The notes: generated by a model from the letters alone, not told the origin. Shown: positions 4,418-28,204, counted from the stretch's first letter. The stretch is DNA of 34,306 nt from Octopus bimaculoides (GCF_001194135.2 NC_068990.1:83919840-83954145), one strand, 5' to 3'. Made by a program: numbers and translations.

Positions 4418-4808
4418 GTGGAGGCGCAATGGCCCAGTGGTTAGGGCAGCGGACTCGCGGTCATAGGATCGCGGTTTCGATTCCCAGACCAGGCGTTGTG
4501 AGTGTTTATTGAGCGAAAACACCTAAAGCTCTACGAGGCTCCGGCAGGGGATGCTCGTGAACCCTGCTGTACTCTTTCGCCACAACTTTCTCTCACTCTT
4601 ACTTCCTGTTTCTGTTGTACCTGTAATTCAAAGGGTCAGCCTTGTCACACTGTGTCACGCTGAATATCCCCGAGAACTACGTTAAGGGTACACGTGTCTG
4701 TGGAGTGCTCAGCCACTTGCACGTTAATTTCACGAGCAGGCTGTTCCGTTGATCGGATCAACTGGAACCCTCGACGTCGTAAGCGACGGAGAGCCAACAA
4801 TACAAATG
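4418..4808 (+). mobile_element. tRNA-headed SINE, family 1, full length, 11-bp TSD
   Basis: A box TGGCCCAGTGG, B box GGTTTCGATTCC; TSD ccccaccggtc at 4407-4417 and 4809-4819; near-identical copies at 8542 and 33422. Confidence 0.9.
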
Positions 4809-5027: not shown

Positions 5028-5099
5028 ATATATGGACAGAAATAAAATCAGTAATATTGACAAAGACGGCTTCAAAGGCCTTTACAATTTAAAGGAGCT
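5028..5099 (+). CDS. LRR exon 4 (72 nt): YMDRNKISNIDKDGFKGLYNLKEL
   Basis: ctacag acceptor, gtaagt donor; LRR consensus. Confidence 0.92.
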
Positions 5100-6124: not shown

Positions 6125-6196
6125 ACGTCTCGTGGCGAATAAAATTGTAACAATTGATGGAAGATGGTTCCAGGACCTTTCCAATTTAACAAGCTT
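6125..6196 (+). CDS. LRR exon 5 (72 nt): RLVANKIVTIDGRWFQDLSNLTSL
   Basis: tgacag acceptor, gtaagt donor; LRR consensus. Confidence 0.9.
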
Positions 6197-6289: not shown

Positions 6290-7065
6290 CAGCACACTGA
6301 CAGACACAGTCCAACTACAAATGGAAGCTCCCAAAAATATCACGCTCACAGCGTTCTTCAAGCTCTGTCAAGATGATGAATTTGCTCCAAGACTGCTATA
6401 CAATGGAGTTCCACAATTCTATACCTGGTACCAAAACAAATGGAAAAGACGTGCACTTGGAGCACCCACACATCATCTGGGAATCAGACACACTTGGCAG
6501 AAGTCTATGTTCTCCATGCCAACTACTCAGAGTTCTACTATCTAATGCTTCTATTACACCATATCAAAGGACCGACATCTTTTACAGCCTTACATACGGT
6601 TGATAACACAGTATGTCAAACATATCACCAGGTTTGCCATCCATCTCAGCGGTCTTCTGGAATATGATGCACACTGGGATGCCACTCTGAAAGAGACACA
6701 AATTCAGTTATGCAGCTGAGAAACCTCTTCTCCGTCATGGCAGCATGGTGGGTGAGAATGTTTTCATTCCAAGGATACCTCTCATCTCAAATGATCTCCC
6801 CATTCAGTTCAAGAGACTGCAGTTTCCTGTCAAACTTAGCTTTGCAATGTCTATTAACGAAGCACAAGGTCAATCTCTAAAGGTGGTGGGACTTAACCTC
6901 TTTCAACCTTGTTTCTCACATGTTCAGCTGTATGTTGGATGTTCTAGAGTTGGTGATGGAAAGAACCTCTACATTCTCAGTTATAAACATGGCAAGACAG
7001 AAAACACAGTATACGAAGAAGCACTTAACATGAATAGTAGGTCCATGTCATATACAGAAGTGTAA
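6290..7065 (+). mobile_element. Helitron RepHel remnant, internally deleted and frameshifted
   Basis: TLTAFFKLCQDDEF..LLY..VPQFYTW, LLLHHIKGPTSF and FIPRIPL..FKRLQFPVKLSFAMSINEAQGQSL..CFSHVQLYVGCSRV (PIF1-like helicase C-terminus) are typical Helitron motifs. Confidence 0.9.
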
Positions 7066-7703: not shown

Positions 7704-8325
7704 GTTCATATTTGTTTCATTTTCTCCATTTTGTGTCTTTGTACATCCGTAGATTTCTGCCACATTCACAAACATATATGCGTAATTAAGAAAGTTCAAA
7801 CGGCGACTTATTCCATTCAATATCATGTTTATTATAGAGATTTTGTAATAAATTATACATTACACTTCTATATTTAACAGTGCATGAATATTCCTTATTT
7901 TTGATTCTGGTGTCTTCTGCCTTTCTATTAAAAACGTTTACCTGGGAATTTACTTAAAGTGAAAACAAATCGTATGCAACAGATAAGTCGTCTTAGCATA
8001 TTTCTGTATATAAGACCTTTAGCTGTTATTTTTAGCATAACGAGTTTTCTTGTGAGGGCTTTATTTTCCTTCATTGCTTGTTTGTTGCTTCAGTCGAAAT
8101 CTACGGATGCACAAACCCTCAAAACGGTGAAAATGAAACAAATATGGACGACTTGTTCCGAAACACACCCGAGTGGGGAATAGTCCTCAAAAATAAACCA
8201 TAATTGTTTTCCCCTCCTCCAAAATTTCGGGCCTTGTGCCTAGAGTAGAAAAATATATTAGGAGATTGTATTTCACTTCTGTTTGCCTTTATGTCGTCTT
8301 TCATGATCTGTCTATCATTTTTCAG

Positions 8326-8397
8326 AAACCTTGGTTATAATGAAATAATAGATATTGAAAACGGTAGCTTCAAAAACCTCGACAAATTAGAGGAGCT
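8326..8397 (+). CDS. LRR exon 6, type A (72 nt): NLGYNEIIDIENGSFKNLDKLEEL
   Basis: tttcag acceptor, gtaagt donor; paralogous to 10970 and 13987. Confidence 0.92.
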
Positions 8398-8541
8398 GTA
8401 AGTTGAATCAAACTTGTTGTATATAAGTATGTATTGTATATATGTACAGTAAATTCCTTCGTATTCAATACCAATGGGCCATGCGAGTTGCTGAATAACT
8501 GAATTTTCCAATCTGATCATCACTTATTAGATGGTCCAAAG

Positions 8542-8931
8542 TGGAGGCGCAATGGCCCAGTAGTTAGGGCAGCGGACTCGCGGTCATAGGATCGTGGTTT
8601 CGATTCCCAGACCGGGTGTTGTGAGTGTTTATTGAGCGAAAACACCTAAAGCTCCACGAGGCTCCGGCAGGGGATGGTGGCGAACCCTGCTGTACTCTTC
8701 CACCACAACTTTCTCTCACTCTTACTTCCTGTTTCTGTTGTGCCTGTAATTCAAAGGGTCAGCCTTGTCACACTGTGTCATGCAGAATATCCCCGAGAAC
8801 TACGTTAAGGGTACACGTGTCTGTGGAGTGCTCAGCCACTTGCACGTTAATTTCACGAGCAGGCTGTTCCGTTGATCGGATCAACTGGAAACCTCGATGT
8901 CGTAAGCGACGGAGTGCCAACAAACAAACAA
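8542..8931 (+). mobile_element. tRNA-headed SINE, family 1, full length, 13-bp TSD
   Basis: TSD agatggtccaaag at 8529-8541 and 8932-8944; (caaa)n tail; empty sites in paralogous introns. Confidence 0.93.
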
Positions 8932-9167
8932 AGATGGTCCAAAGCACCTTACAAAACTCAAAACTTTATATATCCATCGGGATTATCAGTAATATTTTGA
9001 ACATAGTAGAAAGGAGAGAAATGGGAGAAAATATAAGTATAATTTGCGTAAAGAACAAGTTTTATTAATCTTATGAAATACAGGTATCTACAGTAAATGC
9101 TGTAAAATAAAATACTGTATTTTGAGAAGCAACACTCTATTTTAAATACAGTACGAATACTTCATTT

Positions 9168-9300
9168 AATCAAGATACCCTTGGCCTGAAGAGTACCATG
9201 TGGTATACACCTTGCTTGGAGATTTACCACTTCCGAGTTCCCACTCGCTATGAAACATATGCAGCCTGGGTTTTATCCATTCCATTCCTGAACGCTTAGA
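9168..9300 (+). mobile_element. Intronic repeat with degenerate type I hammerhead core (Penelope-like pLTR?), copy 1
   Basis: CTGAAGA at 9186-9192, GAAAC at 9252-9256, followed by ATATGCA-GCC. Confidence 0.5.
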
Positions 9301-9769
9301 TTTTCATTCAGATATCTGGCAACCATGGCTGCCAGCGGTGAAATATAAAATAATTCTTTACAGCTTCTCGTACTTCGATTGGAAAAAAAAAATCCACACC
9401 TTCCACCCCAGTAAACCACCATTGTCCTTGATGATTGTGTTTTGTTTTATCTTATACGGATTGTTTCAAGTTCACTTACTTTCTGTACCTCGGTCCTTGG
9501 GCCCTACATTTGTCTATCTACCTGACTATCTATCTAATTATTTCTCTATCTATACATGTGTGTGTGTGTATATGCATATATTTATGTACGTAAGCATGTA
9601 TGCATGAAAATACAACACACACATACATATATACACATTCATAAAAATATACATATTCATACTAACGTATACATACACAGGAACTTCTTTCATCCCATAT
9701 GGGTAAGTGAACGACGAACAACCGGTGCATTTCAATTCCGTTTGTTACATATACCCTTACATATTTCAG

Positions 9770-9841
9770 AGACCTGAGAGGCAATGGAATTAAGAACAAC
9801 GGAAATGGTTCTTGGGAACAACTTCGTAATTTAAAGAAATT
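9770..9841 (+). CDS. LRR exon 7, type B (72 nt): DLRGNGIKNNGNGSWEQLRNLKKL
   Basis: tttcag acceptor, gtaagt donor; paralogous to 11524, 13362 and 14924. Confidence 0.88.
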
Positions 9842-10018
9842 GTAAGTTGGGTGTATTTTCCTTGTGACTAAGTTTATTAGATTTTATATTTCTACAAACA
9901 TACGCACCTATACATATATCTTTATGTCATTATTCAGTTCAAAATTTCTTACCAATAGAGAAAGAGTTTGTTTCTACCCGAAATCCAAGGCTTGTGTGTA
10001 TGCATGTTTTGTATGCAT

Positions 10019-10066
<48 letters not shown>

Positions 10067-10693
10067 NNNNNNNNNNNNNNNNNNNNNNNNNNNNNNNNNN
10101 NNNNNNNNNNNNNNNNNNNNNNNNNNNNNNNNNNNNNNNNNNNNNNNNNNNNNNNNNNNNNNNNNNNNNNNNNNNNNNNNNNNNNNNNNNNNNNNNNNNN
10201 NNNNNNNNNNNNNNNNNNNNNNNNNNNNNNNNNNNNNNNNNNNNNNNNNNNNNNNNNNNNNNNNNNNNNNNNNNNNNNNNNNNNNNNNNNNNNNNNNNNN
10301 NNNNNNNNNNNNNNNNNNNNNNNNNNNNNNNNNNNNNNNNNNNNNNNNNNNNNNNNNNNNNNNNNNNNNNNNNNNNNNNNNNNNNNNNNNNNNNNNNNNN
10401 NNNNNNNNNNNNNNNNNNNNNNNNNNNNNNNNNNNNNNNNNNNNNNNNNNNNNNNNNNNNNNNNNNNNNNNNNNNNNNNNNNNNNNNNNNNNNNNNNNNN
10501 NNNNNNNNNNNNNNNNNNNNNNNNNNNNNNNNNNNNNNNNNNNNNNNNNNNNNNNNNNNNNNNNNNNNNNNNNNNNNNNNNNNNNNNNNNNNNNNNNNNN
10601 NNNNNNNNNNNNNNNNNNNNNNNNNNNNNNNNNNNNNNNNNNNNNNNNNNNNNNNNNNNNNNNNNNNNNNNNNNNNNNNNNNNNNNNNNNNNN
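10067..10693. other. Assembly gap flanked on both sides by (TA)n
   Basis: N run. Confidence 0.97.
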
Positions 10694-10969
10694 TATATAT
10701 ATATATATATATATATATATGCGTGCATATGTATGTATGATGATAAAGATGCATTTGTGGTGATGGGTGTATGTGTACATATTATATTCTTCTGCTTACA
10801 CATGTTGTTCCTTTATTCTTAGCTTATCTCAGATCTCCGGTTTCCTCTCAGTTATTCCTATTCTATACAACCCACCTTTCCTACCACAATCTCAATAACT
10901 CTTCTTCATACTTTAATGTCCACTAATGATCTGTCGTTTCATTTTATGGTTTGTCTTTTCATTTTTCAG

Positions 10970-11041
10970 AAAACTTGCTAATAATCAAATATCGAATATT
11001 GAAAAAGATAGCTTCAAATACCTTGACAGTTTAGAGGAGCT
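10970..11041 (+). CDS. LRR exon 8, type A (72 nt): KLANNQISNIEKDSFKYLDSLEEL
   Basis: tttcag acceptor, gtaagt donor; LRR consensus. Confidence 0.92.
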
Positions 11042-11523
11042 GTAAGTTGAATCATACTTGTTGTGTATGTGTATGCATTTTATATATATACAGTAAACTC
11101 CCTCATATTCAGCACCAACAGTGTCAGGGAGTTGCTGAATAACTAAATTTTCCAGATATAGGATCACTTATTAAATGGTCCAAAGTACCTTACAAAACTC
11201 ATTAAAATTCTAAATATCTAGTGCGCGGATTCGCCCTTGTATGTCATTGTGACATACAAAATGGAGTGTTGCTTCTCAAAATACAGTATTTTGTTTTACC
11301 ACACTTATTGCATGTACATGTATTTTTAAGATTAGTAAAACTTATTTTTTCTCAAACTATACTTATATACACACACATACATATATACACATTCATAAAA
11401 ATAAACATATTTATATCAATGTATACATACACACGAACTACTTTCATCCCATATACATGAGTGAATGACTAAAAACCGGTGCATTTCAATTGCCTCTGTT
11501 ACATATACTCTTACATATTTCAG

Positions 11524-11595
11524 AGACCTGAGTGGCAACAGAATTACGAACATTGGCAGTGATTCTTGGCAACACCTTCAGAATTTAAAGAAATT
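11524..11595 (+). CDS. LRR exon 9, type B (72 nt): DLSGNRITNIGSDSWQHLQNLKKL
   Basis: tttcag acceptor, gtgagt donor; LRR consensus. Confidence 0.9.
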
Positions 11596-12070
11596 GTGAG
11601 TTGAGTATATTTTTGCCTGTGATTCTATATTTATTAGATTTTATATGTTTCTACGCACATGCACACATAGATATACATATATTTTTATATGACATTATTC
11701 AATTTTATTTCAACATTTCTTGCCAATTGAGAAAGAGCTGGTTTCTAACTTAGATTTAAGACTCATGTGTATGTATGTTTATATGCATGTATATATTTGT
11801 ATATATATGTGCATGGTATGTATGTATGTATGTATGTATGTATGTATGTATGTATGTATGTATGTATGTATATATGTATGTATTAGAAGGTTTGGAGGTG
11901 ATGTATAAGAATTATATATTAGAAAAAATAATAATAAGGTACTCAGATATCTGGATGGTTGTACATTTACAGATTTTTATTAATATGTCACATGTTTTTA
12001 TAAATTAGCGCTTGCATCTATTCTTGTAGATTCTTCAGATTTAATTTTTCTTCAGAGGTGTATATTGCAG

Positions 12071-12171
12071 GCTATTCTTCAGGGTAAGGGTATTTTGATT
12101 CGAATGAAGTTTACATTGTCGTTAGGTGTCCCATGTTAACAAACGAAGGATCCGATCAGAATGCGTAGAGA
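12071..12171 (-). repeat. Truncated inverted copy of the hammerhead-bearing repeat
   Basis: Reverse complement aligns with 12614-12714 at roughly 80% identity by eye. Confidence 0.8.
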
Positions 12172-12613
12172 ACCCAGTTTGAGTGGAGTATATAACTTTG
12201 AAGAGAAATTAGGAATATAAGAAAAGAACAAAGAACAAAAATATGTATCGGGGAGACTTACAAAGACAATATCACATATAGTTTTATACCTTGGTTTGTA
12301 GCCAATTGGAAAAGATCCTGTTTGTAACTTCATTGAAATTTCGACAACACAACAGCTGTGCGTGTATGTCTCTAGTTGCAAGGATTTGGGGTGAATGCCT
12401 GTACAGATCTACATGATTGGTTTTGTGTATGCATTTTATGTATGCATACTCATACGTATACTTGCAGGTCTAGACATGTGTATATTTATTTACATATTAA
12501 AGCTTTAGAAACTATTGTACATTTTTGATAACGTCATTCATTGCTTTATCTATAGTTTTCTAATCAGCATTCCTCGTCCTGTTTTGGATGTTTGAATGAA
12601 CGTATGTATACGC

Positions 12614-12800
12614 TCTCTACGGATTCTGATCGAATACTTCACTTGTTAACATGCGCCTTCTAACGACAATGTAAACTTAATTTAATCAAGATACCCTTAG
12701 CCTGAAGAGTAGTCTATGGTACATACCTTGCTTGGATGTTTACCACTTCTGGGTTCCCACTTACTATGAAACATATGCAGCCCGGGTTTTATCCATTCCA
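12614..12800 (+). mobile_element. Hammerhead-bearing repeat, copy 2
   Basis: CTGAAGA at 12702-12708, stem GTAGT/ACTAT, GAAAC at 12768-12772. Confidence 0.5.
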
Positions 12801-13029
12801 TTCCTTAACTCTTAGATCTTTATTCAGATATCTGGCAACCATGGCTGCCAGCGGTGAAATATAAAATAGTTCTGTTTAGCCTCTCGTACTTCGATTGGAA
12901 AAAAATCCACACCTTTCTGCCCCAGTAAACCACCATAGTTCCTGATGATTGTTTTTTTTTATATATTTATATTTTCTATGCATTGCTTCAAGCTCCCTTT
13001 CACCGTGCCTCTCGATCTTTGGACCTTAC

Positions 13030-13067
<38 letters not shown>

Positions 13068-13361
13068 TTATCTATATAATATATGCGTCTGTGTGTGCGT
13101 GTGTGTGTGTGCGCGCGCGTGCGTGTGTGTGCACGTGTGCGTTAGTGTGTGTGTGTGTGTGCGCGCGCGCATATATTTATGTAAGTGTGCATGTATGTCT
13201 GAAAATATATACACCCACATATACACACATTCATAAAAATATTCATATTCATATTAATGTATACATACACACGAACTACTTTCATCCCATATACATGAGT
13301 GAATGACTAAAAACCGGTGCATTTCAATTGCCTCTGTTACATATACTCTTACATATTTCAG

Positions 13362-13433
13362 AGACCTGAGTCGCACTGGAATTACGAACATTGGCAATGG
13401 TTCTTGGCAACACCTTCAGAATTTAAAGAAATT
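13362..13433 (+). CDS. LRR exon 10, type B (72 nt): DLSRTGITNIGNGSWQHLQNLKKL
   Basis: tttcag acceptor, gtgagt donor; consensus Asn replaced by Thr. Confidence 0.85.
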
Positions 13434-13635
13434 GTGAGTTGAGTATATTTTTGCCTGTGATTCTATATTCATTAGATTTTATATGTTTCTACGCACATGC
13501 ACACATAGATATACATATATTTTTATATGACATTATTCAATTTTATTTCAACATTTCTTGCCAATTGAGAAAGAGCTGGTTTCTAACCTAGATTCAAGGC
13601 TCATGTATATGTAGCTTTATATGCATGTATATATT

Positions 13636-13720
<85 letters not shown>

Positions 13721-13986
13721 TTACAGGCGTGTATATGTGTGTATGATGAGAAAGATATCGTTGTATTGATGGGTGTAGGTGTATATATTATATTCTACTT
13801 ATATATGTGCATATATTCTTCTACTTCATTCATTTTTAGCTTTGCTCAGGTCTTCAGACACTTCTCAATTATTCCTTCTCTATACAACCCACCTTTCCTA
13901 CCACAATCTCAGTAACTCTTCTTCACACATTAATGTTCTTTAATGATCTGTCGTTTTATTTTATTGTTTGTCTTTTTATTTTTCAG

Positions 13987-14058
13987 AATCCTTACTGATA
14001 ATGAAATATCGAATATTGAAGAAGGTCAATTCGAAAACCTCGACAGTCTAGAGGAACT
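13987..14058 (+). CDS. LRR exon 11, type A (72 nt): ILTDNEISNIEEGQFENLDSLEEL
   Basis: tttcag acceptor, gtaagt donor; LRR consensus. Confidence 0.92.
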
Positions 14059-14519
14059 GTAAGTTGAATCAGACTTGTATATATATATACATGCATGGAA
14101 TATATGTACAGTACTCTCCCTCATATTCAACACCAATGGGTCCTGAGTGTTACTGAAAAACGGAATTTTCCAGATATCTGATCATCACTGATCAAATGGT
14201 CCAAAGTTCTATATAAAACTCATTAGAACTCTATATATCCAGTGGGCGCATTCTTCTTTGTATGTAATTGTGACATACAAAATGGAGTGTTGCTTCTCAA
14301 AACGTAATATTTATTTTTCCTTCATTTACTGTATATGCCTGTATTTTATAAGATTAATGAAACTTGTTCTTTATGCAAATTATGCTTATATTTTCCGCTA
14401 TTTCCCTATTTCCCGCTATTTCAAAATATTACTGATAGTACCGATGGCTATATAGAGTTTTAATTAGTTTTCTAAGCTGCTTTGAGCCATTTGATAAGTG
14501 ATGATGAAATATATGGAGC

Positions 14520-14700
14520 AGATAAGATCCGGGCTACGTACGTTTCATAGTGAGCGGAACCCCGGAAGTGGTAGACATCCAAACAAGGTGTATACCACAG
14601 GTTACTCTTCGGGCCAAAGATACCTTGATTAAATGAAGCTTATATTGTCGTTAAGAGGCAAAACACGGAAGATCCGATCTGAATGCGAAGAGAACACAGT
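14520..14700 (-). mobile_element. Hammerhead-bearing repeat, copy 3 (inverted)
   Basis: Reverse complement reads GGC-CCGAAGA...GAAAC-GTAC-GTA-GCCC (core 14535-14612). Confidence 0.5.
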
Positions 14701-14923
14701 TTAGAAGATGTGAGAGGGTGCACATACATTAAAAGGTATTATGCATATATATATATGAAAATATACAAACACACATACATATATACACACATTCATAAAA
14801 ATAAACATATTTATATCAATGTATACATACACACGAACTACTTTCATCCCATATACATGAGTGAATGACTAAAAACCGGTGCATTTCAATTGCCTCTGTT
14901 ACATATACTCTTACATATTTCAG

Positions 14924-14995
14924 AGACCTGAGTGGCAACAGAATTACGAACATCAGCGATGGTTCTTGGCAACACCTTCAGAATTTAAAGAAATT
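14924..14995 (+). CDS. LRR exon 12, type B (72 nt): DLSGNRITNISDGSWQHLQNLKKL
   Basis: tttcag acceptor, gtgagt donor; LRR consensus. Confidence 0.9.
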
Positions 14996-15656
14996 GTGAG
15001 TTGAGTATATTTTTGCCTGTGATTCTATATTTATTAGATTTTATATGTTTCTACGCACATGCACATATAGATATACATATATTTTTATATGACATTATTC
15101 AGTTTTATTTCAACATTTCTTGCCAATTGAGAAAGAGCTGGTTTCTAACCTAGATTTAAGACTCATGTGTATGTATGTTTGTATGCATGTATATATGTTT
15201 GTTTGTATATATAGTTGAAATTCACAGAAAAACAACAAATGGCTCGAGAAGGTGAGAAAGTTTCTTTCATCATCATGATATTTGAAACTGATCAGATTGA
15301 AAATAGTGAAAGTGGCCCAATAATTACAGTTATAAACTTGAACTTGTAATCTGCATAGAGTAACTGTTGATTCCTCAATAGTTCAGCGCAGGTATTCACT
15401 TTTTCGCTAATCGTCAGCTTTATTTTAACACCCGTGGGAAACTGATTTCCACAACTGTATAAGTTTTTCTTCTCAATCCCAAATCACTATGTCAGGTCTA
15501 TTATATATACATTTTATTGAGGTTTTTACTGGTATATTCCATCAGTATTTTTCATTATGAGTGGCTATGGCTTCTACCACACTGTAGGTTCTTGTATGTA
15601 TGTATGTATGTATGTATGGTTGTATGTATGTATGTATGTATGGTTGTATGTGTGTT

Positions 15657-15718: not shown

Positions 15719-16537
15719 NNNNNNNNNNNNNNNNNNNNNNNNNNNNNNNNNNNNNNNNNNNNNNNNNNNNNNNNNNNNNNNNNNNNNNNNNNNNNNNNNN
15801 NNNNNNNNNNNNNNNNNNNNNNNNNNNNNNNNNNNNNNNNNNNNNNNNNNNNNNNNNNNNNNNNNNNNNNNNNNNNNNNNNNNNNNNNNNNNNNNNNNNN
15901 NNNNNNNNNNNNNNNNNNNNNNNNNNNNNNNNNNNNNNNNNNNNNNNNNNNNNNNNNNNNNNNNNNNNNNNNNNNNNNNNNNNNNNNNNNNNNNNNNNNN
16001 NNNNNNNNNNNNNNNNNNNNNNNNNNNNNNNNNNNNNNNNNNNNNNNNNNNNNNNNNNNNNNNNNNNNNNNNNNNNNNNNNNNNNNNNNNNNNNNNNNNN
16101 NNNNNNNNNNNNNNNNNNNNNNNNNNNNNNNNNNNNNNNNNNNNNNNNNNNNNNNNNNNNNNNNNNNNNNNNNNNNNNNNNNNNNNNNNNNNNNNNNNNN
16201 NNNNNNNNNNNNNNNNNNNNNNNNNNNNNNNNNNNNNNNNNNNNNNNNNNNNNNNNNNNNNNNNNNNNNNNNNNNNNNNNNNNNNNNNNNNNNNNNNNNN
16301 NNNNNNNNNNNNNNNNNNNNNNNNNNNNNNNNNNNNNNNNNNNNNNNNNNNNNNNNNNNNNNNNNNNNNNNNNNNNNNNNNNNNNNNNNNNNNNNNNNNN
16401 NNNNNNNNNNNNNNNNNNNNNNNNNNNNNNNNNNNNNNNNNNNNNNNNNNNNNNNNNNNNNNNNNNNNNNNNNNNNNNNNNNNNNNNNNNNNNNNNNNNN
16501 NNNNNNNNNNNNNNNNNNNNNNNNNNNNNNNNNNNNN
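15719..16537. other. Assembly gap
   Basis: N run. Confidence 0.97.
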
Positions 16538-16545: not shown

Positions 16546-16635
<90 letters not shown>

Positions 16636-17084
16636 CATACATACATACATACATACATAGAGAGAGAGAGAAAGAGAGTATGCGTGTGCCTATCTAGATT
16701 ATCTAAGATCATGTCATGTAATCATTGAGTTAGACTCCATATGTTCTATTATAATCCAAAACAGTTGCCTGAGTAGAAAATTCCTGCTATTAGGCAGATA
16801 ATCCCATGCTGCAAGTCTGTTGGCTATAATGGTCATGGAATATAAATTAAAGAATAAGACAGGAAAATATAGTGTTAAATTATTTACTGAAATCTTTTTA
16901 ATACGTGTTTCAGTTACAATTAATTCAGTCTAATCTCATGCATATATTGTTAATTATAATGGAAACGCATGTAAATTTGCCATGAATAAATAAACACTAT
17001 TCTTTCCTGAATTGAACTTTATATGTGTGTGCATCTATGGGCACGTAAGTGTGACTGTTTCTCTGTCTGTCTCTCTGTGTGTAT

Positions 17085-18030
17085 GAGTCATCATTATGGA
17101 AGGTTTCACCATTCAAAGAATTTTGCAAACTTCGAAATAAATTGTAATCTGATGGTGTAAGGTCAGGGCTATATGGTGAATGTGACATCACTCTCCAACC
17201 AAGCGTGAATAATTTTTCACAAGTTAGCAAAGGCGTGTGTGAACTAGTGTTGTCATGTTGGAAAACGATTCCTTTACGATTTGCCAATTCTGGCCGTTTT
17301 TCTTTGATTGCTTCCTCCAGTTTTATTAGTTGTTCACAGTAAACATCTGAGTTGATCATTTGGTTCCTTGGAAGTAGCTCAAAATACACAACATCTTTGT
17401 AATCCCACCAAATTGATAGCATAACCTTTTCTGGTGCAATTCAGCTTTCGATGTGGTTTGTGTTGGTTCATTATGTTTAGAGCATGATTGTTTCCGGTTG
17501 ATGCTGTTGTAGACAATCCATTTTTGATCACCAGTGATGACTCGTTTAAAAAAGAGTTCGATTTCATTGCGTTTGAGATGTATATTGCAAATATTGATTC
17601 GTTATTTTAAGTGAATATCTTTTAATTTATGTGGAGCCCAAATATCGAGCTTCTTAACGAGTCCAAGGCATTTTAAGTGATTTTCATTTGTTGTGTGTGA
17701 TACATCTAACCTCTCTGCAATCTCTCTCGCACAAGTATATGACAATCAGGTTCAATTATGGCTTTGATTCGGTCATCATCAACTTCAGAAGGTCGACCAG
17801 AACGTTGGTCATCTTCAGAACGGAATTTTTTAAACTATTTCTGACATGTGTGTTCTGTTAAACAATCAACACATAAAGTTCACATATCTCTGAGTCTCAG
17901 TTTCAGCAACTTTCTTACCTTTACGGAAATAAAAAAGCAAAATATGGTGAAAATTTTGTTCTTTTGCACTCCATCTTAAAATTGACACTGAACTAACAGC
18001 GGTAAACAAAATTACGCGCAATTTGCTTCT
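17085..18030 (-). mobile_element. Mariner (DD34D) transposase remnant; ends approximate
   Basis: ITGDQKWIVY, MLSIWWDYK, FQHDNT, HSPYSPDLTPSDYNLFRSLQNSL; frameshifted. Confidence 0.92.
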
Positions 18031-18675: not shown

Positions 18676-18747
18676 AAATTTGAGGAACAACCAAATCAAA
18701 GAATATCAAGATGGCGCATTTTCATCTCTTTCAAACATAACTGGAAT
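18676..18747 (+). CDS. LRR exon 13 (72 nt): NLRNNQIKEYQDGAFSSLSNITG(I)
   Basis: tttcag acceptor, gtatgt donor; LRR consensus. Confidence 0.9.
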
Positions 18748-19789: not shown

Positions 19790-19956
19790 TGACTTGAGAA
19801 ACAATAAAGACATGGTCTGTGGATGTCATTTACCAGATCTTATCGAGCGTATAAGTAAAGCAGACAACAGGAATGTGACTGTCCTGGGCTACTGTATAGA
19901 GGCTGGAACCAACCATACCAAGTTAACCCATACGCAGAAACCTTCGCAATGTAAAA
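19790..19956 (+). CDS. LRR C-terminal cap exon (167 nt, phase 2-1): DLRNNKDMVCGCHLPDLIERISKADNRNVTVLGYCIEAGTNHTKLTHTQKPSQCK
   Basis: ttacag acceptor, gtaggt donor; CxC...C...C four-cysteine LRRCT pattern; lies within ORF 19758-19964; phases link exon 13 to 21611. Confidence 0.85.
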
Positions 19957-20210
19957 GTAGGTGAAATCTTCCTTAATTCTGTTGCAATCGTTTCTTCTCT
20001 TTATACGATCTACAGAAATCCACGATGAAAATTCCATATATTTAATATAATTTCCTCTGTTATATATTATCTCTGTAGCAGTTTGCACAACATACTTATC
20101 AATCAAATATGCGAGTTTTTATACTTTACTCCTTGCATTTTACATCAATATTTTACAGATCTTATTTATACTTAGTGTAATTGTTATCTGTATCTCTCTG
20201 GAACTTCACA

Positions 20211-20764
20211 GAAAAAAGGTTCTTCTCTCTATCTGGTGGGATTGCAAAGGAGTAATTCACTTTGAATTGTTACCACCTAATGCAACAATCAATGCTCAAG
20301 TCTACTGTCAGCAATTAGAGCGTTTGAACCAAGCTTTGAAAGAAAAAAAGACTCGCTTTAGTGAATCGAAAAGGAGTGATGTTTCATTAGGACAATGCGC
20401 GACCCCACACTGCAAAGATCACATCACAGAAGATCGAAGACCTTGGTTGGGAAAAAATTCCTCATCCACCTTATTCTCCCGACCTTGCTCCTTCATACTA
20501 CCATTTGTTTCGTAGTTTACAGAATCATTTGGGGGACATAACTTTCGCAAGCCAGGAGGAGGTCGAAACTGATATTTCAGACTTCTTCGCTTTGAAACCA
20601 AAAGAGTTTTACATTGATGGGATTAAAAAACTTGTAAATAGATTGAAGGAAGTCATAGATAATCAGGGAAAGTACATTGATAATTAAATTCCAATTAAAT
20701 ATAACACTTGATCACTTGTTTTCTTTATTCAAAATCCAGACAGAACTTATGGGATGACCTGATA
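20211..20764 (+). mobile_element. 5'-truncated mariner remnant with TIR-like 3' end
   Basis: LSIWWDCKGVIHFELLP, PHPPYSPDLAPSYYHLFRSLQNHL, GIKKLVNRLKEVIDNQGKYID; ends ...cttatgggatgacctgata. Confidence 0.92.
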
Positions 20765-21075
20765 GATTACGCTGCAAATTGATACCTTACCAGTTACAGG
20801 TTTTATAAGGGAGGTCACTCTTAAATATAGAATAAATACTTCAGAATTACGTCCCTTTTTTCGGATTATTTCAACATATTAATGCCTTGATCTGACACCG
20901 GAATTTAAAGTAAAGAGAACACGCCTTTACCTACCTTTTTATGCCCTTTTTTATGCCTTTCCAAATTGTATCAGTGATGTAACTGCAACATCCTCGTGAC
21001 GTGACTGCAAAGCGAATGTTTATAGTCTTCATTTGAAAATATGTTTATAAGCTTAATTAACTATTGGCTCCCATA

Positions 21076-21272
21076 TTCTTTTTACCTGTTTCAGTCATTT
21101 GATTGTGGCCATGCTAGAGCACCGCCTTTAGTCGAGCAAATCGACCCCAGGACTTATTGTATCGGTCTCTTTTGCTGAACCGCTAAGTTACAGGGACGTA
21201 AACACACCAGCATCGGTTGTCAAGCGATATTGGGGCGACAAACACAGACACAAACATATACACATACATACA

Positions 21273-21313
<41 letters not shown>

Positions 21314-21475
21314 GACGGGCTTCTTTCAGTTTCCGTCTACCAAATCCACTCACAAGGCTTTGGTCGGCCCGAGGCTATAGTAGAAGACACTTGCCCAAGG
21401 TGCCACGCAGTGGGACTGAACCCGGAACCATGTGGTTCGTTAGCAAGCTACTTACCACCCAGCCACTCCTACGCC
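21076..21475 (-). mobile_element. tRNA-headed SINE, family 2
   Basis: Highly similar to 7295-7703; internal (TA)n. Confidence 0.87.
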
Positions 21476-21610
21476 ATACTCACATATACAACATTCATTT
21501 ACTGAAACTACATATTCTCTATGATTTCTATATATGGTACATGTTGATTTCTTAACTTTTCTCATATTCATTAACTTATACGTACTTATATGTTTCATTT
21601 TAATGTGTAG

Positions 21611-21696
21611 GTCACACGATTAATTATGAGAGAATTCAGTGCCACGTATGTTCGGAGATGAACTGCAGATATCTGACCGACTGCCATGGTATACAG
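21611..21696 (+). CDS. Ly6/uPAR-like domain, first exon (86 nt, phase 1-0): (S)HTINYERIQCHVCSEMNCRYLTDCHGIQ
   Basis: tgtag acceptor, gtaaac donor; CxxC start typical of LU/three-finger folds. Confidence 0.82.
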
Positions 21697-22085
21697 GTAA
21701 ACAGATATTGCTTTCTCACCTTCTGCTATGATATATCACAATTAAAACTGCCCAGATATCGAGAGTCTTCTTTGAACTTGATTTAATGTTCTCTTTGTCG
21801 AAAAATATTTTGATATCTGTTTACATCTCTCTGACAATCAAAATCCTCTGCATCATAGTTCGTGTGAATTAATTAACTCTTTTTAAGCATTTCTAGATTT
21901 GCTCTGAAACCATTTCGAATTTGTAACTTTTAGAGATAAAATACAACTTTAACGAATTAAGTTTGTAATTGGTCTCATCAGCCGGTTAAAAACAAAGGTG
22001 ACTTCCTTCAGTCAGATTATTGAAACACACACGTTGTCGTCGTGTTTGTGGTATCCGATTTTTCTTTTAATATTTATCGCTGCAG

Positions 22086-22266
22086 CCTAGATGTATGACC
22101 ACAATAGCAATGCACGGTGATTCCAAGGTTGAAAAAACATGCAGCACACGCGAAAATTGCACTGAAACTGAGAGACGGAATGTGTCAAATTGCAATAATT
22201 GGACTAAAGGCAATTCTTGTGTTACTTGTTGCAACACAGGCTTATGTAACGAGAATGTTTTCGAAG
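22086..22266 (+). CDS. Ly6/uPAR-like domain, second exon (181 nt, phase 0-1): PRCMTTIAMHGDSKVEKTCSTRENCTETERRNVSNCNNWTKGNSCVTCCNTGLCNENVFE
   Basis: tgcag acceptor, gtaagt donor; terminal CCxxxxCN motif of LU domains; overlaps ORF 22095-22298. Confidence 0.88.
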
Positions 22267-22319
22267 GTAAGTTTGTTTTTTTTTCTTTTTTCATATAAAT
22301 CGTACTCGAGTTGTTAGAA

Positions 22320-22326
22320 TAGCAGC

Positions 22327-22401
<75 letters not shown>

Positions 22402-22416
22402 GGTGTTGGTGGTAGT

Positions 22417-22495
<79 letters not shown>
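22320..22495 (+). repeat. (TAG)n/(TGG)n/(CAG)n trinucleotide tract
   Basis: Directly visible. Confidence 0.95.
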
Positions 22496-22496
<1 letters not shown>

Positions 22497-22689
22497 GCGG
22501 AAATCACTGTAACAATGCGCTGCTACATCCATCATCTGTTGGTGATTGCTTACTCCTGGAGGATGACACATATGCGCCACCCAGGCAACAATCCTCCAAC
22601 CCACGGGTCTGTTTGGGCAGTCGTTGCTGGTGAGGGTTTAACAAGGTCGGAGTGCAAATCCTACTTCAACTTCTTTTCACTGTCTTTTA

Positions 22690-22976
22690 CGACATGCTGA
22701 AGAAACGTTATGTCTTTTCTTTGATATGCCGATCCCACCAGGCCATGTGTCAAAGATCGTTTCCGAGTTATATAGACTCCATGACGCATATATTCTCCGC
22801 TGGACAAGACGCCGGTCCGTTGCTGGGTTACTGAATTTTCCCAGCTGAGCAAACTGGGTCAACGTGAAATGAAGTGCTTTCCTGAAGAGCACAACGTACC
22901 TCCCGATCCACGAATCGAAACCAGAATCTTGCGGTCATCAGTCTGACATCTTAACCACTAACGCACGCCCCTCCAC
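22690..22976 (-). mobile_element. Older tRNA-headed SINE
   Basis: Reverse complement begins gtggaggggcgtgcgttagtggttaagatgtcagac...ggtttcgattcg (A/B boxes), followed by a SINE-core-like segment. Confidence 0.65.
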
Positions 22977-23209
22977 GCTGGGTTACTGTTACCAAAGGCC
23001 AATTACGGCCAGCCCCTTCTGAAAAGTTCCGATAATCTCAAGAATGAAGAATTCTTCTTCAAACTTGACATGCCATTTAAGGAAAATGACAGGTTTATTT
23101 TCTGGATATAAGAGGCACACGTGTTTCTGTCTCAGTAGGCGTCATCAGCACAACAACCGTCTCGTCTTGTTTCCAGTAGCAAAGGGACTTAGACTTTTGA
23201 AAAAGAGCG

Positions 23210-23330
23210 TGTATATATATATAAGTATGGATATGTGTGTATATGTATATGTATATGTATACTTATATATGTATGCACATTTATGTATATATACATATAT
23301 ATATGCAAACACACATACACACACGCACAC

Positions 23331-23389
<59 letters not shown>

Positions 23390-23715
23390 TATATATGCAC
23401 GCATTTTATACAAATATATTTTTATATATTATATACTTATGTATATACATACATATAAATATATATACAGACATACATAAATACCCATACATATATATGT
23501 ATATATGTATATATATTTATACACGCATATATGTATATATATGTATATATATGTATATATGTATATATGTGTGTGTGTGCGTGTGTGTACGCATATATAT
23601 TTATATGTATATATATGTATATGAATATATACATATATATATACATATATATATAAATATATATATACATATGCATATATGTATGTGTATGTATATATAT
23701 ATATATACATATATG

Positions 23716-23747
<32 letters not shown>

Positions 23748-23775
23748 TGTATGTATGTATGTACACGCATACATA
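23210..23775. repeat. Low-complexity (TA)/(TG)/(CA)/(TATG) tract
   Basis: Directly visible; source of many spurious ORFs. Confidence 0.95.
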
Positions 23776-24386
23776 GCATGCATTATCTTAGAATTTCGTA
23801 TGCCAGATTACAAATCTTTCATCTCTCATACATTACATAATACTTTATCGTGATGGTTTATAACCGAGTTTAGGCCATTGGTTTGACGAACCTTGTAGTG
23901 TTAGAATGAAGCTACTTATTTGAGTGCTTCAAAATTCTGTAGCCGTCTTAGATTTGTGATTAGCACGCATACGGTTTGCAGTAGATACGAGGTTTGATTT
24001 CTGTAGGGAATGCAGCAAAGTTTTCCATCTTCTTTATTATATATACATGTGTTTGTGTGTGAGCATATGTAAATTAGAGGTTCATGAAGCACTCGTCAGT
24101 TTTCCACTACTGCAACAGCTTACAACATGGAGTTGTTCTTGCGTTCATTACCTATTCACAGCTTGTGATAGTAGCGCTGTAACTTCAAGAACTAAGTAAC
24201 AGAATGCAAACTAACCAATCTTGGACCAAGTGCCCTGTCAACTCCACAGTCTTTGATTTGTTATTGTGAAGGAAAAAAGAATTGTATAGAAATCATGCAT
24301 TTACCAGTCGAATTAAATTAATGCCTATAATGCATGTCATGTTTATAATAGCAACGTCTCTGTTTTAATTTTATCGCTATCAACAG

Positions 24387-24469
24387 TCTGGACCAGTTCT
24401 TTTCAATTATATTTGCTTTACAAGAGGCAAGGCAACAAAAATGAAAACCTTACAGCCATATCTAAAGAA
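24387..24469 (+). CDS. SEA-like module exon 1 (83 nt, phase 1-0): (V)WTSSFQLYLLYKRQGNKNENLTAISKE
   Basis: caacag acceptor, gtaagt donor; phase-compatible with neighbours; domain identity is inference. Confidence 0.72.
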
Positions 24470-25109
24470 GTAAGTGCTTGCCTATCTAAAATCCATTTCG
24501 AACTTTCTCTCCCTCTTTTCTCCCACTACTCTCCCTCTTTTCTCCCACTACTCTCCCTCTCTTTCTCTCTCTCTGTCTTGTTGTGTATATAATACACACT
24601 CATAGACAGAAAGACAGACAGACAAACAGACTTATGTTACTCCCATAACAATGCGCAGTGACTTGTTATTGAAAGCCAAAATGAAAAGTATTAAAACGCA
24701 TTATAAGAAGTCTAATACAATCTGTAGGTTCCTCAGTGACAAGCATAATACGTACAGTCCCATTTTGAACGATAGTTAACATCACACTTTGAAAACAAAG
24801 CAGTGACGTGATAGGGAATTGTTCCATTGTACCATTTAAGATAACGAACAGAATATCTCGTCTGAAAGATATCTAACCATCTCCATTGTCATGGAGCCTC
24901 ACCAAATACAAAAAACAACGTTCTCTTCTAAACACACACACACCCCACCCCCCACAAACATCTGGTTTATATAAATGAACAAGCTGTTTGTACGTTCACA
25001 AAATTATATTTGACAAGTTCGAGAAAGGAACGAAAACGCTAATAATAATAATAAAGAAATAAAAAGACTTTTTTTCCAAAATTCTGACTACTCTTTTTCT
25101 CAATATATA

Positions 25110-25652
25110 NNNNNNNNNNNNNNNNNNNNNNNNNNNNNNNNNNNNNNNNNNNNNNNNNNNNNNNNNNNNNNNNNNNNNNNNNNNNNNNNNNNNNNNNNNN
25201 NNNNNNNNNNNNNNNNNNNNNNNNNNNNNNNNNNNNNNNNNNNNNNNNNNNNNNNNNNNNNNNNNNNNNNNNNNNNNNNNNNNNNNNNNNNNNNNNNNNN
25301 NNNNNNNNNNNNNNNNNNNNNNNNNNNNNNNNNNNNNNNNNNNNNNNNNNNNNNNNNNNNNNNNNNNNNNNNNNNNNNNNNNNNNNNNNNNNNNNNNNNN
25401 NNNNNNNNNNNNNNNNNNNNNNNNNNNNNNNNNNNNNNNNNNNNNNNNNNNNNNNNNNNNNNNNNNNNNNNNNNNNNNNNNNNNNNNNNNNNNNNNNNNN
25501 NNNNNNNNNNNNNNNNNNNNNNNNNNNNNNNNNNNNNNNNNNNNNNNNNNNNNNNNNNNNNNNNNNNNNNNNNNNNNNNNNNNNNNNNNNNNNNNNNNNN
25601 NNNNNNNNNNNNNNNNNNNNNNNNNNNNNNNNNNNNNNNNNNNNNNNNNNNN
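25110..25652. other. Assembly gap
   Basis: N run. Confidence 0.97.
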
Positions 25653-25747
25653 CAACATATTTACCGAAAGCGAGGGAATGCAGCTTAAATGTTTTTAAGA
25701 GATAAATTTTGAAAAGCTGCATTCCCTCGCTTTCGGTAAATATGTTG
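25653..25747. repeat. Perfect 34-bp inverted repeat with 27-nt spacer
   Basis: caacatatttaccgaaagcgagggaatgcagctt (25653-25686) is the exact reverse complement of 25714-25747. Confidence 0.95.
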
Positions 25748-25982
25748 CTTATTTTTGGTAGTTTTTTTTACTTATTTAGTCCCTCGATAGCGTGAGGCAT
25801 TGATACACAGTTAATGCCCTTTATATATAATTAAATATATCTATGAAGAAACGATGAATTTTTTCATTACGAAATTTTTCGTTATTTTTTCATTATGAGG
25901 TTTTTTCACGCTGACTACTTGATAAATTCTTATAAAGAATTTATCCTATATTGTATTATATATATATATCTTTCTTTTGCAG

Positions 25983-26035
25983 TTGGAGAAGAAGTTTTTA
26001 CATATGCCAGGTATTTACACAGTCAAGAATTGTGG
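25983..26035 (+). CDS. SEA-like module exon 2 (53 nt, phase 0-2): LEKKFLHMPGIYTVKNC(G)
   Basis: strong pyrimidine tract with ttgcag acceptor, gtaagc donor; phase-compatible. Confidence 0.75.
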
Positions 26036-26198
26036 GTAAGCTAAATCCTTTATCCTTTCAGGTTTCTTCCATTTTTGCTCAAAATATATTAGTGATTTTT
26101 ACCGCAGATGTAAAGTATTGTAGCGCTTAGGTATTATAAAGGTTAATTATGCTCACACAAAGGAACATACATGCGTACCTACATATACATATAGGAAT

Positions 26199-26435
26199 GA
26201 GGGCGCATGGCTTAGTGGTTAGGAAGTTGCGCTCACGATCTCACAATCGGGATTTCAATTCTTAGACTGGGTTCTGCGTTGTGTGCTTGAGCAAAACACT
26301 TCATCTCACGTTGCTCTGCGATCACTTCGATGCCTAACGCGTGGTACACCATGCACCTGTTCAGGCAACGTCGATTTGTTGGAGAGAGTGAGCTAAAATG
26401 TGTCACGAACATTTGATCATTATAAACAAACCATG
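26199..26435 (+). mobile_element. Diverged tRNA-headed SINE
   Basis: gggcgcatggcttagtggttagg A box, degenerate B box, gtgcttgagcaaaacact core. Confidence 0.65.
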
Positions 26436-26969
26436 TCATTCAGCAAAACAGCTGAACGCTCATACGTCGTCTTCGATGGGAGAGTCCATTATATATGTGT
26501 GGTGTGTGGGGGTGCCATCTTGTCAGAAAGCAAGGCAGTACCTATGACTCATTCCAAAGTCATAGGCACTGGTGGTAGTGAGCGAGGAATACATACCGAA
26601 GTTGGAGACCTGGAACGAATCTTTGCAGCAGAGTAGGGTCCGCAGAAGACACTGAAGGTACCAGATAATTGGTTTAAATTATGTGACGAATTGAGCATAT
26701 TACCTATGTATACTATAGCGAGATTTGAACCCAGAATGAAAGGATCTGATACAGAAACAATCTTCTCAGTCCAATTTTCCTAGTTCTGCCAATAACCGCT
26801 CTGAATATTTCATCTCTACACTTTAGATCTCTATCATTATGGTTAAATCACCTTCCTTTTATCCTTCTGTATTCCCACATACTAAAAGTTCTGATGAACG
26901 CCATTGAAAAACCGTTTGTTTGTTTGTTTATTTATTTAAGTTTCTTTTGTTTTGAAATTCTTGTTTCAG

Positions 26970-27109
26970 TGCGCAGAGCAAGACAGAAGTATTTATCCTT
27001 GAGTGCCATGTTCCTAAGAATGTTACAAAAGAACAAGTTAAAGATATTTTGAAAGCAAAAGCGCTACGTAGTTTAGGCTTTGAGGAAGATAGCGAAATAA
27101 GTGATAGAA
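26970..27109 (+). CDS. SEA-like module exon 3 (140 nt, phase 2-1): AQSKTEVFILECHVPKNVTKEQVKDILKAKALRSLGFEEDSEISDR
   Basis: tttcag acceptor, gtaagc donor; phase-compatible. Confidence 0.78.
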
Positions 27110-27430
27110 GTAAGCGCTGTGTCTTGTATCATCTTTATCACCTTCACCAAGCATCATCATACTCTCCCCCTCTTCTTCTTCTTCTTCCGTTTCCTCCTCC
27201 TCATCTTCCTCTCACCCTCCTCCTTATCATCATCATTATCATTGTTATTGTTATCGTCATCATCTCACAAACCGTTACTCCAACTTCCTGACGGTTGTGA
27301 CCGCAATTGTCAGATGATCAGAAATGAAAACTCAGAGCCATGGTTTCTGAACTTTAAAGCTCTCCTAAAAATATATAAATAACTTTACATCCAATATTGA
27401 TATGGCTTATAATTAGAATTTTATATCTAC

Positions 27431-27477
27431 TATGACCGCGAGTCCGCTACCCTAACCACTGGGCCATTGCGCCTCCA
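27431..27477 (-). mobile_element. Isolated 5' head of SINE family 1
   Basis: Reverse complement tggaggcgcaatggcccagtggttagggtagcggactcgcggtcata. Confidence 0.85.
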
Positions 27478-27503
27478 GAGGTGGCCTAATATATATCAAT
27501 GTC

Positions 27504-27829: not shown

Positions 27830-27987
27830 TATATCAATGTCATTTGACATTTGGTTAATCTCTATTTTCTTTTTATAATAGTATTTACAGATAAAGCATT
27901 TTATCAATATTCTTGTATTTTCTTGTATATAAATCATACCAATGTATTTTCTAATGCATGTACTATATTCATGTTTAATTTATTCAG

Positions 27988-28090: not shown

Positions 28091-28204
28091 GTTCGTTTAT
28101 ATTATTATATTTCCTTTGAATTTTTTAAATCTTACTGTTTTAGGGAGAGAATCAGGCAACGAGCTAATAGAATTGTTAGTGTGTCGTGCAAAATGCAAAG
28201 TGAT

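Follow-up and report, generated by a model that had tools for sequence, protein, structure and literature searches.

The stretch analysed here, called the window below, comprises 34,306 nucleotides of one strand of Octopus bimaculoides DNA (GCF_001194135.2 NC_068990.1:83919840-83954145). It is AT-rich, rich in microsatellites and interrupted by four N gaps, and it carries part of the ectodomain-coding region of a gene annotated as an adhesion G protein-coupled receptor (aGPCR). Scanning the plus strand for AG-(72 nt)-GT segments with an open frame identifies 11 exons, seven of which form a tandem array of two types of leucine-rich repeat (LRR) exon in the order A1 B2 A3 B4 B5 A6 B7. All seven are exactly 72 nt long, and each has a pyrimidine tract with an AG acceptor and a GTAAGT or GTGAGT donor. 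The first base of every exon is the third of a codon, which makes the introns phase 2, and each 72-nt exon corresponds to one typical LRR of 24 residues. The array and the LRR exons on either side of it are as follows.

8326-8397, plus strand: A1, type-A LRR exon, NLGYNEIIDIENGSFKNLDKLEE
9770-9841, plus strand: B2, type-B LRR exon and the most diverged B, DLRGNGIKNNGNGSWEQLRNLKK
10970-11041, plus strand: A3, type-A LRR exon, KLANNQISNIEKDSFKYLDSLEE
11364-11808, plus strand: B4 unit, exon 11524-11595 with homogenised flanks
13205-13650, plus strand: B5 unit, exon 13362-13433, DLSRTGITNIGNGSWQHLQNLKK, with homogenised flanks
13987-14058, plus strand: A6, type-A LRR exon, ILTDNEISNIEEGQFENLDSLEE
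14762-15210, plus strand: B7 unit, exon 14924-14995 with homogenised flanks
18676-18747, plus strand: last LRR exon, NLRNNQIKEYQDGAFSSLSNITG, donor GTATGT
886-957, 2103-2171 (69 nt), 2839-2910, 5028-5099 and 6125-6196, plus strand: five upstream, non-duplicated LRR exons

An LRR profile built from the array exons matches each A or B exon with an E value between 1e-11 and 1e-14, and adds two LRR exons to those found by the scan, at 2103-2171 and 18676-18747. Nothing comparable was found on the minus strand of the window, and on the outcome of this search we reject a chance explanation for the array. The seven array exons belong to a longer run of 13 LRR exons, 12 of 72 nt and one of 69 nt, all in phase 2 and each encoding one LRR. 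The five upstream members, flanked by AG and GT and matched by the profile, correspond exactly to residues 1-114 of the annotated protein P0390, and all have orthologues in O. vulgaris.

Exons within type A are 75-81% identical and those within type B 82-93%; A and B exons are 50-57% identical to each other, the same level at which they resemble the other LRR exons of the gene. Self-BLAST aligns 9140-10066 with 12658-13682 (75.7%), 10694-11368 with 13700-14391 (79.6%) and 11364-11808 with 14762-15210 (96.2%), and the B4 unit at 11364-11808 also matches 13205-13746 (89.7%). An earlier note on this DNA had described seven 72-nt phase-2 exons in two classes with alignable introns, and a block at 9168-11810 repeated at 12685-15200; the exon scan, the identities and the self-BLAST matches confirm both descriptions. 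From 886 through 18676, the LRR exons in all cases begin with A and end with CT or TT. Any exon join therefore yields CTA or TTA, which both encode leucine, and any exon can be removed with the Leu codon and the solenoid register kept. As a matter of arithmetic, the same note was thus right that in-frame skipping is open to any subset.

Gene identity and domain layout

The array gene corresponds to annotated O. bimaculoides protein XP_014773211.1, which NCBI names ‘adhesion GPCR A3’. It was identified from its non-LRR exons, which led through O. vulgaris protein P0121 and an exhaustive HMMER search to P0133 (O. bimaculoides UniProt A0A0L8HEX5). The cluster of P0133 also holds XP_014773211.1/A0A0L8HDZ7 (‘adhesion G protein-coupled receptor A3’) and A0A0L8HDD6, and the proteins P0133, P0390 and P0391 match the window exons exactly. 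Pfam was applied to P0390, the 1204-aa O. bimaculoides form, in which the repeats score as LRR_8 (E=1.7e-70). A GPS motif at residues 862-902 (CSCNHLTSFAIL; E=3e-14) stands directly ahead of a secretin-like seven-transmembrane (7TM) domain, 7tm_2 (PF00002, residues 912-1145, E=3.4e-29). Both lie outside the window, which ends within the first GAIN exons, and were read on the whole protein. Seen on XP_014773211.1, the GPS (E=3e-14) and 7tm_2 (E=3e-29) matches bear out the earlier placing of the array in a receptor ectodomain.

Residues 307-762 of P0390 map exactly onto the exons downstream of the LRR run (19790-34140), with approximate bounds:

~19790-19960, plus strand: LRRCT-like exon
~21612-21696 and ~22085-22266, plus strand: Cys-rich Ly6/uPAR-like module
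~24385-24469, ~25982-26037 and ~26970-27109, plus strand: further ectodomain exons
~27988-28090 and ~28815-28966, plus strand: HRM exons (HRM weak)
~30121-30352 and ~33969-34140, plus strand: GAIN exons

The encoded receptor thus reads LRRNT (in the orthologue only), at least 13 LRRs, an LRRCT-like cap, a Cys-rich module, a weakly matched HRM, GAIN/GPS and 7TM. The repeats are typical extracellular LRRs of 24 residues (LxxLxLxxNxLxxLxxxxFxxLxx) with LRRNT and LRRCT caps. The LRRNT is found in the orthologue (Pfam E=5.6e-6), the O. bimaculoides N-terminus falling in an assembly gap, and exon 19790-19960 carries the CGCHLP...C cap. The O. bimaculoides models start at MITNFEDG, inside the first visible LRR, and are devoid of the signal peptide, LRRNT and first LRR that are present in the O. 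sinensis and O. vulgaris orthologues. Window position 1 (position 2100 of L003, the chromosome-level record) directly follows a 2.1-kb run of N; because of this run, we regard the model as 5'-truncated.

The HRM match (PF02793, profile positions 2-63 of 66) has an E value of 1e-3 and a score of 19.8 bits, which is below the 26.2-bit cut-off. An O. vulgaris fragment named “adhesion GPCR G6-like” shares 49% identity with exons 26970-27109, 27988-28090, 28815-28966 and 30121-30352, and P0121 shares 49-59% with the GAIN-region exons 27988-30352. Across the stretch that runs from LRRCT through HRM, Pfam returns no Ig family at E<=10, HRM alone being matched. Sequence matches in the PDB are to ADGRG2, ADGRG6, ADGRG3 and ADGRL3 (E down to 3.5e-51), with ADGRG2 and ADGRG6 the nearest solved structures for the GAIN-7TM region, although ADGRA structures may be absent from the PDB. 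One paralogue carries the name ‘G6-like’. Given the lack of an Ig match and the nearness of the GAIN-7TM sequence to ADGRG2 and ADGRG6 among solved structures, we do not regard the name “A3” as established for this gene.

The Cys-rich module ends in CCNTGLCN and lies between the LRRCT cap and HRM, in the place of the Ig domain of vertebrate ADGRA. Pfam gives no UPAR_LY6 match to it, and the Ly6-like label comes solely from the cysteine pattern ending CCxxxxCN. Among O. vulgaris isoforms (proteins P0392, P0271 and P0393) there are one or two copies of the module, a difference of 89 aa. Judged from the proteins, the module appears to be tandemly duplicated and optionally included in that species.

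The HMMER search returns 29 relatives at E<=1e-30, mostly octopus paralogues that share the LRRCT, Cys-rich, HRM and GAIN layout. By reading of their sequences, they differ in LRR number from about 3 to at least 13. At the locus of the O. vulgaris paralogue P0121 (L001), the 10 kb upstream contain no LRR exon.

Age, copy number and homogenisation of the array

The orthologous O. vulgaris locus (L002) comes from a gapless assembly based on Oxford Nanopore Technologies reads. Its order is A1 B2 A3 B4 A4' B5 A6 B7 A8, followed by a B remnant and the last LRR exon. O. sinensis isoform X1 reads A1 B2 A3 and then four near-identical B-A pairs. O. bimaculoides therefore has seven A and B exons and O. 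vulgaris nine, besides the B remnant; for O. sinensis the count reaches at least 11, as read from proteins (the longest isoform) rather than the genome. That ectodomain length varies by copy number, as the earlier note proposed, holds between these three octopuses.

Outside the repeats, the O. bimaculoides and O. vulgaris loci are collinear at 85-93% identity. When exons are removed, the flanks of the A units pair one-to-one across species (A1 with A1 at 89%, A3 with A3 at 93% and A6 with A6 at 89%), whereas flanks of paralogous A units within a species are 65-84% alike. The A1 exons of the two species are also 89% identical, and the B5-A6 stretch is collinear with O. vulgaris B5-A6 across 1.4 kb. 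The one-to-one pairing of A flanks dates A1, A3 and A6, together with the alternation of A and B, to before the species split, so that the ancestor shared by O. bimaculoides and O. vulgaris already had the alternating array. A simple recent copying of block 9168-11810 is rejected, as A3 and A6 are matched by separate orthologues in O. vulgaris.

Two O. vulgaris units look anomalous. A4' (L002 30256-30327) has an intact frame, a weakened donor, GTAAAT, and ends in AT rather than CT; it is absent from all annotated O. vulgaris isoforms. The B remnant (L002 39848-40054) consists of the upstream flank of a B unit only, with the exon deleted exactly at the acceptor. We take both as signs of the birth and death of units.

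The flanks of O. bimaculoides B4, B5 and B7 are 97-99% alike, but are only 83-88% identical to those of any O. vulgaris B. These identities indicate that the ~450 bp around each of the three exons were homogenised by gene conversion, or else duplicated afresh, long after the two species had diverged. O. vulgaris has undergone recent homogenisation of its own: its A6 and A8 exons are 96% identical, with 149 of 150 positions matching in the upstream flank, and its B5 and B7 exons are 94% identical. The description of the array as recently expanded is thus right for the young tracts around B4, B5 and B7 and wrong for the A/B alternation, which is older than the species split.

Variable sites among B4, B5 and B7 are more frequent in the exon (9 of 72) than in the flank (14 of 324; Fisher one-sided p=0.0125). 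The exon changes are mostly non-synonymous and cluster at repeat positions 8-10 and 14-17. Between species, the unique LRR exons have a Nei-Gojobori ratio of non-synonymous to synonymous change (dN/dS) of 1.06 and the A and B exons one of 0.71, and several orthologous LRR exons show lower conservation than the introns beside them (A3, 83% vs 93%; A6, 81% vs 89%). The numbers are small, and the exon changes fit either diversifying selection or selection against homogenising residues that differ; relaxed constraint is also compatible with a dN/dS near 1. By eye, the 7TM region looks well conserved between the O. bimaculoides and O. vulgaris proteins.

Annotated isoforms and competing explanations

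Splitting 13 annotated proteins from three species and three pipelines into repeat units gives the following forms, all of which are database models rather than reads. The units listed are those that follow A1-B2-A3.

O. bimaculoides, 1204 aa: B4 B5 A6 B7
O. bimaculoides, 1132 aa: B4 only
O. bimaculoides, 1132 aa: B7 only
O. vulgaris, 1387 aa: B5 A6 B7 A8, two Cys-rich modules
O. vulgaris, 1363 aa: B4 B5 A8, two Cys-rich modules
O. vulgaris, 1339 aa: B5 A6, two Cys-rich modules
O. vulgaris, 1298 aa: B5 A6 B7 A8, one Cys-rich module
O. vulgaris, 1250 aa: B5 A8, one Cys-rich module
O. vulgaris, 1250 aa: B7 A8, one Cys-rich module
O. sinensis, 1394 aa: four B-A pairs
O. sinensis, 1298 aa, two forms: two pairs each, with different B units
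O. sinensis, 1250 aa: one pair

There are three forms in O. bimaculoides, six in O. vulgaris and four in O. sinensis, with 1 to 8 variable units per form. They differ by whole 24-residue units, except for the 89-aa Cys-rich module in O. vulgaris, and the last LRR exon (18676-18747) is the acceptor in all annotated skipping events. A1, B2 and A3 are present in 13 of 13 models. The proposal that any subset of the exons might be used combinatorially is therefore not supported, since only the near-identical units downstream of A3 vary. The further proposal that splicing varies ectodomain length fares better, in that isoforms differing by whole units are annotated in three species, but some of these forms may be artefacts of the repeats.

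We consider it probable that cassette exons encoding one LRR each are arrayed in tandem in the germline within the ectodomain region of an octopus-specific aGPCR, with an old alternation, turnover of units and a solenoid whose length is altered by splicing. Starting from the alternating array of the common ancestor, unequal crossing-over would have gained and lost A/B units since the split, and gene conversion would have rendered the ~450 bp around O. bimaculoides B4, B5 and B7 near-identical, while amino acids within the repeats changed rapidly. Transcripts would keep A1-B2-A3 and include varying downstream units, such that the LRR solenoid changes length by whole repeats. The anatomy of the exons, their orthology, the copy-number difference among species, the homogenised tracts and the presence of isoforms in the annotations are demonstrated; we infer that the isoforms are real and regulated, and that LRR number alters ligand binding or adhesion.

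Several observations weigh against this interpretation. Every variable unit is near-identical to others, and most deletions span whole repeat periods between homologous exons, a pattern that is also the signature of de Bruijn-graph collapse, ambiguous mapping and template switching by reverse transcriptase. Because the ends of B4 and B7 are identical (30 nt at the 5' end and 33 nt at the 3' end), there is no way to distinguish the 1132-aa A3-B4-L13 and A3-B7-L13 forms from such artefacts. The O. bimaculoides sequence comes from a gapped short-read assembly, so that the adjacency of B4 and B5 and the count of seven come from a single sequence. The excess of exon changes among B4, B5 and B7 amounts to nine sites and was noticed post hoc. 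Finally, a search with the spliced 263-aa LRR peptide, which included Logan and other run assemblies, found nothing more than 36% identical, but it returned only proteins of up to 461 aa and says little about the gene.

It is possible, though we think it rather unlikely, that the solenoid is constitutive, that its copies have turned over through neutral unequal crossing-over and gene conversion, and that the short isoforms are artefacts of near-identical repeats. Such a gene would account for the invariance of A1, B2 and A3, for the confinement of variation to near-identical units and for splice sites that are equally strong in all seven exons. A switch inside the end sequences that B4 and B7 have in common would generate exactly the two short forms annotated in O. 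bimaculoides, and a dN/dS near 1 is compatible with relaxed constraint. However, forms of this kind are reported by three pipelines in three species. The O. vulgaris annotation, moreover, drew on PacBio Iso-Seq and RNA-seq, with splice forms added by PASA, and has a mean of 1.36 transcripts per gene (PMC10700109), which makes six forms from one gene unusual. The B5|A8 join in that species is bracketed by B5-specific base 66 and A8-specific base 3, an 8-nt interval that holds the exon boundary, despite identical tracts of ~40 nt elsewhere that were available for a homology-driven switch; this precision speaks against a pure artefact. In addition, five of the six O. vulgaris models leave out B4 by itself, despite its being no more than 88% identical to B5. 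Real cassette skipping, while not proven, is on balance the likelier source of the annotated forms.

If exons are chosen, two intronic segments that recur in both orientations might contribute:

8934-9143 (plus strand), inverted at 11258-11368 (minus strand) and 14279-14490 (minus strand): segment X
9144-9420 (plus strand) and 12600-12930 (plus strand), inverted at 14513-14693 (minus strand): segment Y

RNA duplexes between X or Y copies have predicted energies of -110 to -225 kcal/mol, compared with -24 to -65 kcal/mol for shuffled sequence, and in O. vulgaris the orthologous units carry X the same way round after A1, A3 and A6. These segments could form pre-mRNA duplexes of 110-210 bp that loop out groups of cassette exons. 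Such duplexes may influence exon choice or the formation of circular RNA, or may be substrates for ADAR. A speculative extension, to which we attach a low probability, is that unit turnover and diversification of exposed LRR residues create graded adhesion-receptor specificities in octopus neurons or chemotactile cells, with X and Y helping to choose the exons that are looped out. If so, the gene would be a small-scale counterpart, based on LRRs and aGPCR splicing, to the expanded protocadherins.

Artefacts of assembly offer an improbable alternative, in which the near-identical units are haplotype or assembly duplicates, as the earlier note had allowed, or the O. bimaculoides array is misassembled, for instance by loss of an A exon between B4 and B5. 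The assembly is indeed gapped, and the chromosome-level record (GCA_001194135.2, L003) is 100% identical to the window and has the same gaps, so it provides no independent check. The B4, B5 and B7 flanks, 97-99% identical over ~450 bp, are long enough to mislead a short-read assembly, and O. vulgaris has A4' between B4 and B5 where O. bimaculoides has no exon. On the other hand, copies of the block are only 76-96% identical by self-BLAST and contain differing insertions (a short interspersed element, or SINE, and X and Y segments in different orientations), a divergence well beyond that of haplotypes, and on these grounds we reject haplotype duplication. The unit order also recurs in the independent gapless long-read assembly of O. 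vulgaris. As for misassembly, the interval from B4 to B5 contains no gap, and the full protein with all seven exons is an annotated product.

Known systems and intronic features

The octopus-specific ‘group 3’ aGPCR expansion is reported to show enrichment in axial nerve cord, suckers and skin, and LRRs occur in 5 of 22 members of the octopus aGPCR expansion (Ritschard et al. 2019, PMC6408891). Its members share GPS, an adhesion-type 7TM and, in some cases, LRRs with the array gene, which by its layout is a putative member of the group. That paper is pitched at the level of gene families and, in the text read, does not describe the A/B array, interspecies copy number or LRR-unit isoforms; our literature search found no paper citing the accessions of the array gene. 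Adhesion GPCRs are among the families expanded specifically in octopuses, and the locus adds a further level of diversification within a single member.

The array gene resembles vertebrate ADGRA2 and ADGRA3 (GPR124 and GPR125) in having an N-terminal LRR block with LRRCT, followed by a (here weakly matched) HRM, GAIN/GPS and 7TM. Vertebrate ADGRA proteins have about four LRRs and an Ig domain. The octopus gene, in contrast, has at least 13 LRRs and no Ig match, with the Ly6/uPAR-like Cys-rich module instead.

One LRR per exon, in-phase introns and exon duplication or shuffling are also known from gonadotropin/LGR receptors and from brown-algal LRR-ROCO genes (PMC11378527). The ROCO exons are likewise 72 bp long and phase 2; they undergo alternative splicing and have been likened to Dscam (PMC11378527). 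In human NLR genes, the modularity of LRR exons enables skipping of NLRP3 exon 5 (PMC6642158). The array gene shares with these systems single-LRR exons that can be skipped in frame between in-phase introns, but differs in its aGPCR context, its two alternating types, its concerted evolution and its change of copy number between sister species. A further likeness is to CD97 and the EMR receptors, whose aGPCR ectodomains have tandem repeats, each on a cassette exon. In ADGRE5 (CD97) and EMR, EGF repeats are alternatively spliced and repeat number shifts ligand preference. Those repeats are EGF modules that can be lost as independent domains, whereas an LRR is part of one continuous solenoid, which its removal makes shorter and curves differently. 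The design of the array is one already known, from modular single-LRR exons and from aGPCRs with spliced repeat modules.

Dscam1 and the lamprey variable lymphocyte receptors (VLRs) share with the locus ectodomain-coding cassettes duplicated in tandem, and the cassettes here are modular, in frame and fast-evolving, with several isoforms, with the tissue enrichment reported for the family and with intronic inverted repeats that could bias exon choice; nonetheless, it is very improbable that stochastic or somatic choice of cassettes gives each cell a distinct receptor, because Dscam uses exactly one exon per cluster, mutually exclusively, whereas forms here hold 1 to 8 variable units and number 3-6 per species, not thousands, and because VLR genes are incomplete in the germline and assembled by a somatic process like gene conversion from donor cassettes that have no splice sites, whereas these cassettes are canonically spliced, frame-intact parts of a single transcription unit. 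The analogy drawn in the earlier note between this array and Dscam or VLR diversification is accordingly set aside, with neither mutual exclusivity nor somatic assembly and a handful of isoforms at most.

Single-repeat exons at this locus undergo gain, loss, homogenisation and possibly skipping, so that solenoid length varies from one sister species to another and may also vary among transcripts. Should the isoforms prove real, the locus would offer a tractable case for how LRR number tunes ligand binding by aGPCRs. Near-identical cassette exons also make assemblies and isoform catalogues unreliable without long reads.

Three further features lie in the introns of the array and of its downstream flank:

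8541-8928, plus strand: tRNA-derived SINE in the A1-to-B2 intron, target-site duplication gatggtccaaag
10067-10693, no strand: assembly gap within (TA)n of the B2-to-A3 intron
15719-16537, no strand: second assembly gap, in the intron from B7 to the last LRR exon

On either side of the first gap the sequence is collinear, with order and orientation preserved, both with the paralogous block, where (TA)n runs unbroken at ~13640-13718, and with the O. vulgaris intron, which has no gap (L002 19205-20169 and 22911-23560). Between those two O. vulgaris stretches lie 2.7 kb in which (TA)n runs occur but nothing resembling an LRR reading frame. B2 and A3 are both complete, and all annotated proteins join them directly, so the reading frame is safe at this point. 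The second gap is anchored by 15310-15655, which aligns with L002 40195-40543, and by 16550-17078, which aligns with L002 41746-42276; its O. vulgaris equivalent holds no LRR reading frame. To judge from these alignments, both gaps probably hide no exon. An eighth A exon within the second gap was considered and rejected, as the anchors place O. vulgaris A8 before 15310 and there is no LRR frame in the corresponding interval.

The SINE is 95.6% identical to 4418-4806 and 88% identical to 33406-33791, and ~94% identical to copies in the O. vulgaris locus L001. It is absent from the orthologous O. vulgaris site, where the sequences matching 8211-8541 and 8932-9166 abut at L002 16230/16218, and its insertion is therefore specific to the O. 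bimaculoides lineage.

In other introns of the window, inspection by eye yields candidate remnants of mariner-type transposases and a Helitron/PIF1-type helicase-like open reading frame, at 16997-17422 (minus strand), 20267-20684 (plus strand) and 6745-7065 (plus strand). Three introns contain long trinucleotide repeats (22318-22500, 29000-29115 and 30393-30480) that are 87-96% identical and read as poly-Tyr, poly-Ser or poly-Val, depending on the frame.

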